NCBI RefSeq assembly: GCF_000315625.1
Contig: NW_005434593.1
Location: 343,657 to 407,656, forward strand
Reading direction: 5' to 3'
From: Guillardia theta CCMP2712
Taxonomy: Eukaryota; Protista; Cryptophyta
DNA length: 64,000 nucleotides
Shown here: positions 27,594 through 47,046 of the stretch, in pieces
How positions within the stretch are numbered: the stretch's first letter is position 1
Layout of the letters: each line of letters begins with the position of its first letter
Position numbers and translations under genes: made by a program
The notes under the pieces: model-generated
Told to the model about the DNA's origin: nothing
Seen by the model: only the letters and a program-made list of their open reading frames with translations
Database searches by the model: none

Positions 27594-28219
27594 ATGTCGC
27601 GCAAGTCGCGTTCTGCAGGAGGAATCAGAGAGGAGGTGAGAGGATGGCGGATAACTTCTGCTCCTGGAGCTCTTGGGTGAGTTGGTAGGATTGAGATTGA
27701 AAGCATTCCAGTAACTCGATATGATTGACAGCGTCGTCTATGACTTCCTGCCCATCGATTTCAATCTTCTCCTCGAGGAGCACGCTAACTGCGAGGAAGG
27801 CAAGACATTAGCGATGCTAGAGGTGATGTCGATCACAATCACAATGCACCTTATAATGCTGCTGCAAAAGTGTAATATCGGTTGGTGCTACTTGAATGGT
27901 CGAGGGTGTCCCAGGGATTACAAAGAAGCTACCAAGTGGTTTTCGAAGCATCCCAAGCAAAACTCAAGTGCAGGAAGTCAATACAACATGGGGTGAGAAC
28001 ATACTGATAGAACACTGAGATATCCTACTATCAAGCTCCAACTTACGCGTATCTTCTGGCAGTGTTATGTACTCGTTCGCTCTTGGGGTTGATAAGTTGG
28101 AGCGGCAAGCGTCGGAGGCTTTTGGATACTACAACAAGCTCAGAGTGCAAGAGCGACAGATGTATGAGATATGCAACTCAGGAGCCAAAGCCCTAGATCC
28201 GAGCTATACCACTAACTGA
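27594..28219 (+). CDS. Small Sel1-like repeat protein
   Basis: Spliced CNIGWCYLNGRGCPRDYKEATKWFSK and SQYNMGVMYSFALGVDK...AFGYYNK match the Sel1 repeat consensus. Several short introns. Confidence 0.75.
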
Positions 28220-28395: not shown

Positions 28396-30530
28396 TCAAA
28401 CTTCTTCCCTGATCCACTTGAGAAAAACATCGAGGCAATACTTCCCTACTGGGTGGATGCAGGGCCAGAAAACGAATATCAAGAGTGCAGTTATCAAGAC
28501 TATGATCACTTCACGAACTGCGTTCGCCCCTTGAGCTCCTTTGCCGGTGTAAGAGCAAGGGTAGTCGTTGCGGCATCCCATGGATATGCAGAGATTCAGC
28601 AGACCATCATTGTTGGAGTCCTTGACAGAGTAAGTCCACGGACCTGCGACCCCGATAGACTGGAAGCTGCGAGAGTAAAATTATTCATTGCTGAAAGACT
28701 TAGCCCCAGACGTTCGCACCTGCACATGGTGTTGTAGATGTCCATGCAGTAGCTGCAGCATAAGGGAAAGATGTTGAGCTCGTTTATGAAGTCCACGGGT
28801 GGGTTGGTCGAGTTGGCGCAATCGCTGTCTTGTTGGCACTGAGAAATCAACCTATGACCCATGTCAAACAGATGTATCAAACAGCTGTTGGCGCCGTTGT
28901 GCTTCAAGTCGCAGCGGCTTTCTGACCTTCTAGTGCAACAATCTCTGTGAGCATATTCTTCAATTTGTGAGGTATGGTTGATGAATGTCTGCAGGGCAGG
29001 ACATCTTGAATCGCTTGCAAGGTTCTGAAATGATCGCCAGAATGTGACTCATAAGGGACTTCAAGGGGAACAAGATTGCCTGCAAAGCGAGCGAACAGCA
29101 ACATATGTCCGAGCATTCCGGCTCTTGGAAAAGGTTTTGACAGTCACAGCGACTTCGGACGGCGGTGTCAGAACGTATGTAGCCTTCCTGTCTTGATGAT
29201 CAGACTTTCAACAGGTGCTGACTCCAAACATCTCACACAGCAATCAGGCAGAAGAGCTCGTCTTTGCCTCAGCGAATAGGAAAAACCATAACGCCCGGAA
29301 ACTTCCCCGCAATGCGACTCAAAGGGGCTGCACGTCGTGAGGAAGAGAGACGGAGGGAGAGCACGAGACCTGGTGTCAAGATACTCGAAGCATTTCTTGT
29401 ACGTCAGTTCCTCGGTCGATACGACAAAATCCCAGGAGTAAGCACCAGCCTGAGTCTTCTTCCCGGCACAAACACTCCCGAAGTACTTGGCGCTGACCCC
29501 TGAAACGAAGGATCAAAGTCAGGACAGTGAGAGTCAAAGCCTTCCTGACGAGGTCGTGCAGAAACCCTTCTGCAGACGGAAAGTCTCACTTCACTGCTAC
29601 ACAGCAGCAGGCAAAGGAACCTGAATAATGCCTCCAACGTACAGACAGCCCGGAGAGGAGGAGTCTTGCGCGGTCAGGTAGTTCCGCAAAGTCGGAGGAG
29701 GCACACCAAAGGTCCAAGAGCTAATCTGATGTTGATAGAACGAGTCCCCTCCTTGCTTGATAGACACGTTGACACCACTCGTATTGCCGATCTGATACTT
29801 GCTCACATAATACGAGCCCTATCACAACAGCTCTGATTCAGCAGACACCAACCCACACTCGCATCACCGGACACTCGGTCGAGACTTGGCTGTAGATGCC
29901 GTACAGATCAATCTTGCTGGAAGCTGCGTTGCATCTGACATCACATTCACAAACCACGTCAACTCGATCAAGATTCAAAACAAAAGCGAATGAACGCACA
30001 GATCTGAGCTACAGCAAGCGTAGTTGTAAACTCCCATGGAGTCTTCTTTCTGGCCTCTGCCATGTGATTGCGTTAGCGCTGACGTCAATCTTAATTGCAT
30101 GAGACACCGAGCTTGATAGCACTGATCTGACGACACACACCCAAGGCTGATGGATCCATCTGAGTACATCTTTGCAATGCATGAAGATGTAGCGGCACAG
30201 GTCGACATCGAAGTTGACGACACTGTATAAGTGCTTCCAGTCTTGGTGACTTGTTGTACGTAACACTTCAAACATGCTGCTGGCAAGACTGTACAAAGGC
30301 ACTTGTTAGGTACCCGAGCATGAGATTACAGCGAGATTCAGTGACAGCATCCAATTGAAGAAGGCAAAGAAGACTCAATGAAAGTTGCGGAGGTTGAATC
30401 AAGGAAGGCAGGGCAAGGCGTGAACGAGAGATGGAGGAGGAGAGGAGATGTAAGAGACACGGAGGAAGAGACGAGGGTGAAAGAATCTCTTACTGGTGAG
30501 GAGGAGGAGGAGGAGATTTAGGCGCAGCAT
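28396..30530 (-). CDS. Secreted/type I membrane Cys-rich protein with N-terminal three-finger (Ly6/uPAR/toxin-like) domain
   Basis: Signal MLRLNLLLLLLTILPAAC, then LKCY...TCAATSSCIAKMY...LGCVSSDQC...YACCSSDLCN (8 Cys), further Cys-rich exons, and a C-terminal hydrophobic helix VIIVLITALLIFVFWPCI. Middle exons only partly resolved. Confidence 0.75.
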
Positions 30531-42321: not shown

Positions 42322-42815
42322 CAGAGCTCCTCCTCCTCCTCCTGCTCCTCCGTCGCCTCGCATCCCGCTGCTCTGGCACTGGCTGCTGTCCTAGTTTTCA
42401 AATCTTTTCGTCCGTTGGCGTGTGGCAATAGGAAGGCGTGTAAAACTTAAAATACAGTGCACCACCCACCCCATCTCCCAGAATCTCCTGGGTGATACTA
42501 CCCTCGCCCACGGGAATCGGAAGCTCTTTTCAATAATTAGGGCCGTTTCCCGCCGGCTCCCAGATTCCAGATTCCAGATTTTTTCGTACAAATATAACTC
42601 AATTTCTTTTTTTCTTCTCCAAATATTTTGGAGAACTCAATTATAAATTATACAAAATTGATGCGATCCGACGCGGATCCGATCACCCGTGGCCCTGGCC
42701 GGCATCCGAGGATGATCCGGGCCGCAGGGGGCGGGGCCCGGCCGGGCGGGGGCGCCTCGCCGCTTGGCAGTTGACTAAAACTTTTGATTTTTGAAACGGT
42801 CAGACTGGTTTCCGA

Positions 42816-43625
42816 ATGCGAGGGCCAGCGGCGTTTGTCGTTGCCGTCGTGATGGCGACGGGAGCACGAGGAGGTGATGAGAGCTGAAGTGATGATAATG
42901 ATAAGACTCCTTGAACCTGCTCCTCATGCCTGACTGTGTTTGAGTGTTCTGTCTCTTGTCGCAAGGACTAGTTTAAGTTGTCTCTTTTTGTACCTGCTTG
43001 CCTCACTGCAGCTGTTCTGAGATGATCATGTCAAGCGCCATTACTTGTCAGCTCGTGTAAACTTGCTTCAGTTCACGGATTGAAGTGCTACCAGCCATCA
43101 AAGACTGTGGCTCTCCAAGACAAGATTAACCTTGATGCGCTAGCTGTACCGCCTTCTTGGCCGTCACTAGATACCTATCCCACAGGGTTGATAGAGCATG
43201 ATTGCAGTTCGCTGAAGGAAGAGCAGGATTGGGGCACAGGTGGCTTCTGTCTCAAGATTGTGATGCGCAACGCATCGATCCAGCGGGACGTTGCCACAGG
43301 TTCTTGCTATCGGTCGTTGCTGGTGGGTTACAGGTCGGATCAGATCGGTGGACTTTCTGACGCTGCTTGCAAGGTGTTGAGCGGAATTCAATGTGATTCC
43401 AACGGCAAGACCGGTCAGGCATATTCCATTCTCACCAATCAGACTTTCACTTACTACTGTTGCACCGGGAATATGTGAGACAGCAAGACTACACATGCTT
43501 CTTCTGACTCACTGATTGGAAGGTGCAACTCATCACCAAGACGTGCATTGGGTTCCTTCACGACTCTTGCAACATGTCTCCTTTCCTGCTTCTTGTTTGT
43601 ATCTAGAATGACTTCAATCTTATGA
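42816..43625 (+). CDS. Putative GPI-anchored three-finger/Ly6(quiver)-like protein
   Basis: Exons 42816-42873, 43072-43474 and 43523-43625 give MRGPAAFVVAVVMATGARGVHG|LKCY...C...FCLK...GSC...YYCCTGNMCN followed by SSPRRALGSFTTLATCLLSCFLFVSRMTSIL* (small residues then hydrophobic tail, GPI-signal-like). Confidence 0.78.
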
Positions 43626-43918
43626 GGATCTTTAATGAATAAATGTCTCCCCAACTTGCGATGTCAACACAGCCCTTACATCTCTGTTCTCCTCCAAGGA
43701 GCCTTCTCAACAAAAAAATTCCTATGCAGGACCTCCAGCAGTACAAGCGATCAGAGTGTGGGAGTGATCGGATAGATCAGAAGCACTGTGCAGCACGTCA
43801 TGCCGCAGGGGAGATCTTCAGCGCTGCTTTGATCGTTGGCATACTAACAAGATCGGGACAAGGACAAGGCTAGGGCTGCGCTTGTATGGGAACTGAAGCA
43901 GCAATGAGAGTGATAGCG

Positions 43919-46211
43919 TCATGCCATCATGCCACCATTGCCTCCCCATGCGACACCATGGGACTTCTGAAACCTGCATCGGAGGTGAGCCAGCGACAAG
44001 ATCAGAGGGCCATTGACCTGCTCCCCCCTGTGAGAGTTGTGTCCGGCAGCATGTATGGCCTTGCGAGAGAAGGTCCGAGGTCGTAAAGGATCCTTGCAAG
44101 ATCATCCCGCATGTCGCTTGCACTTGTGTACCTGACGCTGTGTCAGCAACAAACTCTGAACGAGGTCGCTCAACCGTCGGTCAATTTGCTTCTGTAAGGC
44201 CTTGTCCACCACCTAAACAGGCACCATCATCCTATAAAAGCAGCAAGACACTCTTGTCCTGAACCTGGGCGAAGGGCGGAGACATGTTAAAAACAATGCT
44301 TTTGAGGTCTGGAGCTTTCAACTTCAGGTCTCCGACCATCGTCTTTCCCCATGAGCCTCCTGACACCTTTGGACCACCGCTCAGTAACCGAAGCTCGTCA
44401 AGGAATTTCACCGAGAAAGGAAGCTGCCCAGAAGTCAACTTGAAAAGAGTGGCTCCAACACTCCACAGGTCACTAGACGGAGTCATGGCAACTTCGTTAT
44501 ACTAAGACCAAAAAATCAGAGAAACCCCGGTCAAATCCTACCACCGATGAGGTAGCGATACCTGTTCTGGAGGCATGTACCCATGTGTTCCAGCATACAT
44601 CATTGCGTCCTGCATTGCTACCAGCTCTCCGTACATGGGAAGGAACTCACTAAAGTCAATCTGACAATCCATGTTCCTGCATATTCACAAAATTTAGTGC
44701 CCATGGGAACAAGTTGTATCGTTCAATTCCTTACTTGTCGTATTTCTCCATGAGATTCTAAAAACAAAGAGGAATGGAAATTATCAGCATGGTCAAAGCA
44801 GTCGTCAGTTACAACCTTGAGGCGAGGAAGGGAGGGTTGTCGGTGCAGGATCTTGAAGCATTCTGAAATCTGTTCCAAGCCAATAGAGCTTTGCCCTTGA
44901 CTGATAGACAAGAAGACCTCTCGGAGTTTGTCCAGGTGCTCCTCAGCCCCGTTGACATACGTCAGAGCGACCAGCTCGCCATACATGGACCCGAATTCCT
45001 CATAGCCGATGCTCCCGTCCCCATCAATATCATATTTCTTTACAAGAGATTCGACTTGCCCACGGTCCGGTTGAAGCCCCAAGCTGTTCAGACAATCGTA
45101 CACAGAATCGAAGTCTAGAGAGCCTTTCCGGTCACGATCCAGCGATTCAAACACTTGCCGCAAGGCGGTTGATGTCCCTGACTCCGAGATCGAATTGTAC
45201 TCCGGGTCAAAGATGTAAGAGGGCAGTCCTATTCGGTCACTTCCCAGGACTCCAGTAGCAGTGCCAAAGTCTATCAACTTGTATATCCAACCTCCCTCGC
45301 CATCATCCACTCTGATGATGTTCTGCGGTTTGATGTCTCGGTGTATCAACCCAGAGCCATGCACATCTATGAGAGCATCCAACACGTTGATCCCGACCCT
45401 TCACATCGCAAGTTGTCAGAGGAGGGGGATTTCGCCAGCTTTCAAAAACCTGCAGGCCTCAGATACAGAGATAGGACCTCGCTCCACGATGATATCATGC
45501 ACAGACTTCCCCTTGAGGTGTTCGAGGATCAAGTACACCAGCCCTCCATTCTCTGCCTGCACATGCAGAAAGTGACTCAACGTGGGTATGAGTTCCAAAA
45601 CTTCAAGTCCTTACGATGCATCCGAAGTCAATTAGTCTCGCAATGTTCGGACAATTCAAGCGCTTCATCGCAAACCCCTCTCGTAATAGTAGAGACATCT
45701 CCCCCTCCTATCCTGTTTTGTCAGTTCTCTCAAAGTGATCTTTAACATATCAACACTTTCCTTCGGCCGCACAAGCTTGATCGCAACTTCTCGTGGCTTT
45801 TCATGCGGGTTGACATGCTCAGCAAGAAGGACAGTTCCGAACGATCCGCGACCGATCTCACGAACAAGGCTGTATCTTTCTCGTATTGGTCGAGGCAGAA
45901 GTTGCCAGAGCTTCATGCCGGATGGGATCTCAGTGAAGGAACTTGCCAGTCTGTAAAGGCAAGTCAAGGAATGAGAGGGATACAAGGACTTACATCCTAT
46001 GCTGCAAGCCCCTTGCCTTCTTACGGCATAACGAAATCCTTGGAGCTGAACAGAGAAATCCTGTTCCCTTGAATGGAACGGCCTGACATGATTGCTGAAC
46101 GCAGAAAGCTGGTGAGTTCACTACAGCGCTTGCACCAGTGAGCAGTGCCAGGAGCATCACTGTGAACGCCATCGAGAGGTCTTGGACGGCTGGTCTGATC
46201 ATGTCCAACAT
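43919..46211 (-). CDS. PknB-like Ser/Thr kinase with four EF-hand-like motifs inserted between DFG and PPE; N-terminal signal + transit-like peptide
   Basis: Motifs RYSLVREIGRGSFGTV, VAIK, HRDIKPQN, DFG (45271-45263), EF loops DIDGDGSIGYEE and DKNMDCQIDFSE, GTHGYMPPE (PPE at 44573-44565), SDLWSVG, RYTSASDMRDDL. N-terminus MAFTVMLLALLTGASAVVNSPAF. Confidence 0.88.
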
Positions 46212-46276
46212 CGGCGCTAGTCACTCAAGACATTTTATACCCCGTGATGCATTCCTGCTGAAATCTGAGTCAGAGC

Positions 46277-46606
46277 ATGGCTCGATCACACCTCAGACCC
46301 TCTCACGACTCCTCCCTGGCACCATTAGAATCCTACCTGACACGGTATCTCAGCTTCTCTCCTCTCCCCTCTCCTCCTCCCCTCTCCTCCTCCCCTCCCC
46401 TTCTCCACATGCTGCTCCTGATGCTCCTCAGGCTGTCCCCCCTTGCGACTCCTTCTCGCCTCCATCATCAATATGTGCTCTCCCCTTGCCTCTACCTCGA
46501 TAATCTTCTAGTAGACACAATAAGTAAATATGGGTATGTCCGTCGGTCGGACACCTTTATGGACACCCGGCGGATCCAGGGACCTTGCAAGGGGACAAGA
46601 AATGTG
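46277..46606 (+). CDS. Possible small spliced ORF (MARSHLRPSH...), unknown
   Basis: Two plausible GT-AG introns, the first with a TCC-rich tract and CTGAT branch. No motif recognised. Confidence 0.25.
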
Positions 46607-47046
46607 ACAATGCTCGCCTTGGCGCCCTTGGTGAGGCGAACGATTGTACTTGGAGCGGGAAGGGAGAGAAGGAGGAGGAGTAAGAGGAGAGGGGGGGTGA
46701 GAACTGTAGGAGGACAGAAGCGGTAGAGAGGCGAGAGTGACTGAGCACGGTCATATCAACTGTAGTACAAGGAAGTCTGCACTGTATGCGCGGTCCATCA
46801 TAGACGACGTCGAGAAAGAGGGAAACAGGGAGGCGATGTAAATAAAACTCAGGTACTAGGAGTGGGAGACGAACGTGACGTCTGAATTTGAACTATGAAA
46901 CGCTTCTGTGCAATTTTTGCAGTTGGCTATCCAATCACAAGAACGGCATGAACTTCTCTACTATGTTCGCACTGTATTTCTCTACAACATCGCTGATCTC
47001 AACAATGGAAAGCAAAAATGAAAAGCATCCGTGATGTACAACCTTA

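Follow-up and report, generated by a model that had tools for sequence, protein, structure and literature searches.

A silent but conserved gene of Guillardia theta encodes a candidate three-finger-like surface protein

Does an alga carry a cell-surface protein of the Ly6/uPAR (LU) type? The question is raised by a locus of the cryptophyte Guillardia theta CCMP2712, in a stretch of 64,000 nucleotides (contig NW_005434593.1, positions 343,657 to 407,656 of the forward strand; hereafter the window), in which an initial annotation, made from the sequence alone, had described two genes with a signal peptide, the motif LKCY and a cysteine-rich domain ending in Cys-Asn (CN). The two genes lie 12 kb apart on opposite strands; the one on the forward strand (gene 2) had been read as a glycosylphosphatidylinositol (GPI)-anchored protein of Ly6/CD59/sleepless layout, and the other (gene 1) as its paralogue. 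Comparative evidence identifies gene 2 as a genuine gene that is kept by purifying selection and is silent in ordinary cultures. We favour the reading, with a probability of about 0.6, that it encodes an expanded Ly6/uPAR-like (three-finger-like) domain serving as an anchored binding module, probably used conditionally.

In its revised form gene 2 comprises four exons that encode a precursor of 170 amino acids (Table 1). The start codon, the signal peptide (with Arg2 in the n-region and AAFVVAVVMA as hydrophobic core), LKCY, the YYCCTGNM that splicing joins to CN, and the hydrophobic tail were all found when the sequence was read and spliced, as were the first and last introns in the phases originally given, both bounded by GT..AG. 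A further intron had been overlooked. Positions 43323-43373 are interpreted as an intron because the 17 amino acids that they could encode are missing from all homologous proteins (P0002 and P0005 to P0008, which read CYRSLL[VI]LSG[IV]QCD unbroken), because the closest related metagenome contig (L001, differing at 6 of the 51 nucleotides) has an in-frame stop at 43350, and because the segment has GT..AG borders, a branch-point-like CTGAC motif 14 nucleotides before the AG, and a length that fits the RNA-confirmed introns of neighbouring genes. One cysteine is lost with this segment, so that the nine cysteines originally counted become eight, the number canonical for three-finger domains, and the uncertainty over an odd number disappears. 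The mature domain of gene 2 thus has 117 amino acids, with cysteines at positions 3, 42, 57, 76, 88, 110, 111 and 116 (gaps of 38, 14, 18, 11, 21, 0 and 4), and ends in a CN that depends on the predicted last splice. Read-through of the third intron stops right after ...CCTGNM, so that only spliced mRNA carries the CC-x4-CN hallmark. The window (approximately 50% GC) is dense in introns of 43-60 nucleotides, and those of the neighbouring genes, as seen in RNA contigs, have GT..AG borders and usually a CTRA-type motif 10-25 nucleotides before the AG. The short introns of gene 2 match this pattern.

We assessed constraint on gene 2 by comparison with related sequences. A phmmer search against 1.84 billion representative proteins gave three matches (P0001, P0002 and P0003), and a profile search added P0005 to P0008. 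P0001, a fragment of 81 amino acids with 95% identity to the query, is encoded on L001, a 4-kb metagenome contig collinear with window positions 42713-46713 at 94% identity. Exons of the revised model differ from L001 at 12 of 513 nucleotides (2.3%) and introns at 26 of 297 (8.8%; Fisher p = 9e-5), while all splice-site dinucleotides are conserved. By segment, exon 1 has no substitution in 58 nucleotides, exon 2 has eight (six synonymous and two in a single codon, T to N), and exon 3, the most conserved block of the family, has one, which is synonymous; intron 1, by comparison, differs at 17 of 198 nucleotides (8.6%). The ratio of non-synonymous to synonymous substitution rates (dN/dS) amounts to 0.18 for the whole coding sequence and to 0.06 for the mature domain, where a single amino-acid change (two non-synonymous nucleotide changes) stands against seven synonymous changes. 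P0002 is more distant (57% identity over its best-matching stretch) and reads CYRSLLV-LSGVQCD without the 17 residues of the original model. The third match, P0003, a bacterial repeat protein of 1252 amino acids (phmmer E = 4e-4), was regarded as spurious: the WGTGGFCLKIVMRNAS segment of gene 2 aligns to five repeats of the form WG-x-NNYCYKV-x-x-x-N-x-T in what resembles a secreted repeat protein of Bacteroidota, probably by coincidence.

Conservation extends beyond this close relative. Homologues are also encoded at four further metagenome loci (L002-L005), of which one comes from a TARA ocean sample; the region of exon 2 can be aligned with L002-L004, and the mature domains of gene 2 and L002 align with z = 25. 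To model L002, L003 and L004, GT..AG introns were selected that preserved the reading frame and gave the highest similarity, and invariance of the eight cysteines and the terminal motifs was scored in L001-L004, the four loci modelled in full. Across gene 2 and these loci, the eight cysteines, L[KR]CYQ, P-x-W...YP-x-G, [FY]CLK, ATGSCYRSLL-LSG-QCD-NGK-G and [FY]TY-x-CC-x4-CN are invariant or nearly so. In all of them, and also in gene 1, the (-3,-1) rule puts signal peptide cleavage directly before L[KR]CY (after V-H-G in gene 2).

Table 1. Segments of gene 2 and of the N-terminal part of gene 1, in window coordinates.
Feature	Position	Strand	Description
Gene 2, exon 1	42816-42873	+	58 nucleotides; ATG at 42816; ends in phase 1; encodes the signal peptide (19 complete codons and one split codon)
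Gene 2, intron 1	42874-43071	+	198 nucleotides, GTGATG...TTCAG, phase 1; predicted from sequence
Gene 2, exon 2	43072-43322	+	Opens V-H-G-LKCY; long loop 1 with P-x-W...YP-x-G; Cys2, Cys3 (FCLK), Cys4 (GSCYRSLL)
Gene 2, intron 2 (newly recognised)	43323-43373	+	51 nucleotides, GTGGGT...GCAAG, phase 0; in frame and stop-free in this strain; between Cys4 and Cys5
Gene 2, exon 3	43374-43474	+	VLSGIQC (Cys5), DSNGKTG, third loop, FTYYCC (Cys6, Cys7), TGN and two nucleotides of the Met codon
Gene 2, intron 3	43475-43522	+	48 nucleotides, GTGAGA...GGAAG, phase 2; interrupts the Met codon that precedes the terminal Cys-Asn; contains a CTGAC motif
Gene 2, exon 4	43523-43625	+	Cys8-Asn, N-S-S, PRRALGS spacer, 15-residue hydrophobic run, 7-residue polar end SRMTSIL, TGA at 43623-43625
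Gene 1, N-terminal part	29931-30530	-	Signal peptide and 76-residue eight-Cys domain, LKCY to YACCSSDLCN
Gene 1, first intron	30289-30493	-	Phase 1
Gene 1, second intron	30057-30107	-	51 nucleotides, phase 2; shown by P0004
Gene 1, third intron	29935-29999	-	Phase 2; shown by P0004

The layout of the predicted protein suggests how it might work. Gene 2 has the cysteine pattern and motifs by which Ly6/uPAR domains are recognised (a first cysteine at mature position 3 in LxC, a terminal CC-x4-CN with invariant Asn, and a cysteine count, here eight, in the range of eight to ten), and by position its cysteines can be matched to the core three-finger pairs. Cleavage of the signal peptide would expose L-K-C-Y at the mature N-terminus, and the cysteines would pair C1-C3, C2-C4, C5-C6 and C7-C8, the last two pairs being set by CC-x4-CN. 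The C-terminal hydrophobic signal would probably anchor the domain on the outside of the plasma membrane, most likely through exchange for a GPI anchor at N-S-S directly after the last disulfide. The enlarged loop 1 (38 residues, P-x-W...YP-x-G), together with the ATGSCYRSLL-LSG-QCD-NGK-G block, may then form the surface that contacts a ligand, and the protein would work through binding to a second protein, either on a surface or secreted, and not by catalysis. The more specific role proposed in the initial annotation, modulation of channels or receptors, is conjectural.

How the domain would be held at the surface depends on the tail. In all modelled members CN is followed by N-S-S or N-G-S, a spacer of 5-10 residues with Arg or Pro, a hydrophobic run of 12-15 residues and 6-9 polar residues (in gene 2, N-S-S, a 7-residue spacer and a 15-residue run). 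This layout is kept in L002-L004 while the sequence drifts, and three of the four amino-acid changes between gene 2 and L001 fall in exon 4. The tail is a candidate signal for GPI attachment, or else a very short anchor in the membrane. That a three-finger-like domain is instead carried by a short type I transmembrane anchor with a cytoplasmic stub of 6-9 residues, or is released, seems to us somewhat unlikely. This alternative draws on the Arg-containing polar end that follows the hydrophobic run in gene 2, L003 and L004, since such ends of 6-9 polar residues are atypical for GPI signals, and on gene 1, which is a longer protein with a C-terminal hydrophobic segment and not a single-domain protein of GPI type. 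A GPI signal is nonetheless favoured because runs of 12-15 residues are too short for a typical plasma-membrane helix; moreover, in L002 an Arg immediately precedes the hydrophobic run, and small residues followed by a short spacer, as seen in every member, make up the usual layout of a GPI signal.

Much of the evidence on the fold comes from gene 1, which encodes a far longer protein, with the three-finger-like domain as its N-terminal module and a separate hydrophobic segment at the C-terminus. A transcript open reading frame of a marine microbial eukaryote (P0004, from the MMETSP collection) is identical to spliced gene 1; it reads ...CCSSDLCNAASS... across the CN junction, which proves the intron at 29935-29999. 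Both introns of gene 1 given originally are present, the second in the codon before CN. The same transcript skips 30057-30107 (GTGTCT...GGCAG), a second intron that is in frame, stop-free and placed after Cys5, and that the initial annotation had likewise missed; read as coding, it would add 17 amino acids and one cysteine. Short in-frame introns free of stops, 51 nucleotides long in both genes, can thus pass as coding sequence and distort cysteine counts. The resulting gene 1 domain (76 amino acids, eight cysteines, gaps of 21, 5, 13, 5, 17, 0 and 4) fits the typical LU range in size and spacing, and from the second cysteine onwards the gaps (5, 13, 5, 17, 0, 4) appear close to the spacing of CD59.

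Sequence and structure searches with gene 1 point towards three-finger proteins. The Pfam query, a spliced fragment (P0004:1-62), starts 23 residues into the mature domain and so lacks Cys1. The top five matches were UPAR_LY6, Toxin_TOLIP, DUF7622, CD59 and Activin_recp, and wherever these are named three-finger families, the alignment is in register with the C-terminal end of the profile. The best PDB sequence matches were BMPR2, CD177 and PSCA, none of them significant. An AlphaFold2 model, computed with the intron-encoded insert included, shows three beta-hairpins at a mean predicted local distance difference test (pLDDT) score of 59 (65-73 for the greater part of the core, less than 50 in the insert). 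The top 16 Foldseek matches of this model were ectodomains of TbetaRII, BMPRII, ALK1 and GPIHBP1 (E = 0.05-0.6). VIA-align, which is independent of Foldseek, placed three-finger structures in all of its top 12 rows among 48,161 PDB representatives (Z of 3.7-5.1: Prod1, bucandin, PSCA, mambalgin-1, Lynx2, CD177 in two entries, irditoxin, GPIHBP1, TEX101, ringhalexin and bungatoxin). A shape search of the ESM Atlas returned mixed rows with template modelling (TM) scores below 0.5 and was uninformative, and an alignment of exon fragments for a PDB profile search was discarded, its C-terminal pieces being misaligned. Each value is sub-threshold and all agree in direction, giving moderate support to three-finger membership of gene 1.

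For gene 2 itself, protein language-model neighbours included the TbetaRII ectodomain, QVR, Ly-6-related and UPAR/Ly6 clusters, and nine of the ten best family-bearing matches belonged to one clan, at scores of 0.75-0.85 that serve as leads only. The last exon of L002 matched Pfam CD59 at E = 0.005 over just 19 residues around the terminal CC-x4-CN. These results are taken together with the cysteine and motif pattern, which fits. Overall, we consider a three-finger fold rather probable for gene 2 and very probable for gene 1.

Several results count against this reading. None of the three splice junctions of gene 2 has RNA support, and no transcript was found, depth being zero over 42405-43612 in three transcriptome assemblies. 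Translations of the gene 2 exons, whole and in pieces, had no Pfam match even at E <= 10, and phmmer against PDB sequences returned nothing. The AlphaFold2 model of gene 2 was unusable (mean pLDDT 33), the query being an unspliced exon translation that held the 17 intron-encoded residues and lacked the final M-C-N; its alignment had five rows, and the model was not used in fold searches. Of the structural predictions, then, only that of gene 1 gave hairpins, and for gene 2 no fold was recovered. The loops of gene 2 (38, 14, 18, 11 and 21 residues in a domain of 117) are far outside those of typical LU domains of approximately 60-95 residues. Even for gene 1 all matches stayed below threshold: P0004:1-62 scored 17.3 bits against UPAR_LY6 (E = 0.007; cut-off 24.8) and 17.0 bits against Toxin_TOLIP (E = 0.01; cut-off 21.2), Foldseek E-values were 0.05 or higher, Z did not exceed 5.1, and TM scores were below 0.5. 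The Pfam gathering threshold for PF00021 and the snake-toxin-like clan was reached neither by the gene 2 exon translations nor by the gene 1 fragment.

Alternatively, gene 2 would encode a cysteine-rich surface protein peculiar to its lineage and folded in its own way, sharing LxCY and CC-x4-CN with Ly6 proteins and gene 1 only by convergence or chance, an explanation that we consider unlikely. In its favour are the missing sequence and profile matches to any three-finger family, the failed structure prediction, loops twice the normal length, language-model scores below 0.9 of a kind often reached by shuffled proteins, and a resemblance to gene 1 in nothing but LKCY and the final 14 residues (hhalign of the family against gene 1, 81% probability; global z = 6.3). 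It leaves unexplained, however, why eight cysteines in core three-finger order and with the end motif should be invariant across L001-L004, why L[KR]CY should form the mature N-terminus of every member, and why nearly all named language-model neighbours should come from one clan. It must also accommodate gene 1, only 12 kb off, with the same end motifs, one exactly shared intron and independent three-finger support.

We questioned whether introns could strengthen the tie between the two genes, which, as originally observed, have almost no other sequence similarity. Shared intron positions had been taken as the mark of an old paralogous family. The intron before CN is indeed exact in position and phase, but the phase-1 introns lie 3 codons before LKCY in one gene and 6 in the other, inside signal peptides that cannot be aligned. 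Phase-1 introns are common near the ends of signal peptides. The 51-nucleotide introns also differ, being of phase 0 between Cys4 and Cys5 in gene 2 and of phase 2 after Cys5 in gene 1. L002-L005 are far closer to gene 2 than gene 1 is, yet their CCDSDLCN is uninterrupted, without the third intron of gene 2, and in L002-L004, whose 5' ends are on the contigs, the signal peptide is joined to L[KR]CY without an intron. Their introns (80-180 nucleotides, against 48-51 for the short introns of gene 2) lie instead after CYQ-x, in YP-x-G, before [FY]CLK and in the third loop, with a further one just after CNG in L003 and L005; almost no positions are shared with gene 2, and only some among the four loci. 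Because close homologues carry introns elsewhere, intron positions turn over rapidly in this family, and the argument from shared introns is weakened accordingly. The CN intron that the two genes share either is ancestral, with loss in the other lineage, or was gained twice in parallel.

A shared introner-like element was also considered and rejected, since the first introns of approximately 200 nucleotides, the CN introns and the 51-nucleotide introns show no pairwise sequence similarity (z <= 0). Besides genes 1 and 2, the small family supported by the comparisons takes in at least five loci from metagenomes; no third member within the window was detected by six-frame motif scans. The segment L002:3493-3855, in the gene that adjoins the gene 2-like gene on that contig, is homologous to window positions 27871-28198, in the gene that abuts gene 1 (tblastx E = 1.5e-18). 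This may point to an origin of the two genes through a local duplication followed by rearrangement.

Gene 2 differs from its surroundings in expression. The three assemblies that lack it cover both of its neighbours at depths of approximately 20 to 260. Across approximately 11 RNA-type runs from five studies, only 0.00-0.05 of the sequence words of 42700-43700 were present, and these came from the 3' end of the neighbouring gene. For a control region in gene 1 (29860-30300), these runs contain 0.44-0.46 of the words, the share expected for spliced mRNA, and DNA runs contain 1.00; gene 1 is therefore expressed in these runs. One raw-read RNA run (X7) was thinly sampled, with 7 reads over 3 kb, and was uninformative. 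No protein from a transcriptome or genome-annotation source matched gene 2, all matches being open reading frames on metagenome and Logan contigs. Gene 2 is thus silent in ordinary cultures, an outcome that the initial annotation had itself set against its proposal. Because gene 2 is selectively constrained yet silent, we infer that it is probably expressed only in a particular life stage or condition. The silence, and the restriction of homologous proteins to contig open reading frames, would also suit a non-functional duplicate that is decaying in this strain, on its way to becoming a silent pseudogene, but this is very improbable given an intact reading frame, six canonical splice sites whose dinucleotides are conserved in L001, a domain dN/dS of 0.06 (seven synonymous against two non-synonymous nucleotide changes), introns that diverge approximately four times faster than exons, and deep conservation across four further taxa.

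The reading of gene 2 as an anchored three-finger-like module can be set beside three known systems. Animal GPI-anchored LU proteins (CD59, Lynx1/Lynx2, PSCA and Drosophila sleepless/quiver; PF00021, PF25152 and PF17064, in the snake-toxin-like clan) have the same passage from signal peptide to L-x-C-Y, and gene 2 resembles them in a cysteine-rich domain that ends in aromatic-x-CC-x4-CN, in eight cysteines in core-disulfide order, and in the small residues and short hydrophobic tail directly after the domain. Unlike them, it belongs to a non-animal marine alga and its expression was not detected; its domain has 117 residues against 70-90, with a greatly enlarged first loop and inter-loop linkers; and most Ly6 proteins have a further disulfide in loop 1 that is missing here. 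The pair is also set apart from animal LU proteins by its Pfam results (none for gene 2, sub-threshold scores for gene 1), the fold of gene 2 being predicted from motifs.

Type II receptor ectodomains of the TGF-beta/activin/BMP group (Activin_recp PF01064, ecTbetaR2 PF08917) combine a three-finger fold and a ...CC-x4-CN end with long loop insertions. BMPR2, which ends ...YRFCCCSTDLCN, was the best PDB sequence match for spliced gene 1, and such ectodomains were the top Foldseek matches of the gene 1 model and the top named language-model neighbour of both genes, although all E-values were non-significant (0.05-2). In these receptors the ectodomain is followed by a transmembrane helix and a kinase, whereas gene 2 stops after its short tail. 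Elapid three-finger toxins (PF00087) share with gene 2 an N-terminus that reads LKC..., a CN at the C-terminus and a core of eight cysteines that has no additional disulfide in loop 1, and several (bucandin, mambalgin-1 and others) were among the structure matches of gene 1. They are, however, secreted, soluble proteins of 60-75 amino acids, while gene 2 has an anchoring tail, and a toxic role is not suggested.

The distribution of the fold gives these likenesses their interest. A 2026 survey found LU/three-finger proteins in all animal phyla and none in plants, fungi or two choanoflagellates, and proposed that the fold originated at the transition to animal multicellularity (PMC13719153). Our literature search found no report of LU domains in algae. 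A conserved algal family with signal peptide, LxCY, an eight-cysteine core and CC-x4-CN would, if real, challenge the view of an animal origin and would offer a simple unicellular system for asking what three-finger-type domains bind. Whether the LU domain is indeed no animal invention, with a homologous algal family made up of a constitutively expressed multidomain gene 1 and a silent, GPI-anchored single-domain gene 2, is doubtful on present evidence. Were it so, either the fold would be older than animals or genes would have passed between animals and algae, and the silent member might be a recognition protein specific to a life stage, for example on gametes.

The flanks of gene 2 are compact. 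Downstream lies a convergent kinase gene on the reverse strand, whose transcript ends at 43613-43630 and so overlaps the gene 2 stop codon (43623-43625) and last codons. An AATAAA stands past gene 2 at 43637-43642 on the forward strand, and its counterpart in L001 is AATAAT. Upstream, a divergent intergenic region of 430 nucleotides separates gene 2 from a gene on the reverse strand (transcript start at approximately 42375-42383); within it, 42660-42770 is a very GC-rich block with direct repeats of GATCCGA type, in which L001 has a 4-nucleotide insertion. This block may be a bidirectional promoter. In one run (X2), a single RNA contig of low depth matched only 42538-42582 (45 nucleotides), with unrelated sequence on both sides, which suggests that this segment is a short repeated or shared intergenic element.

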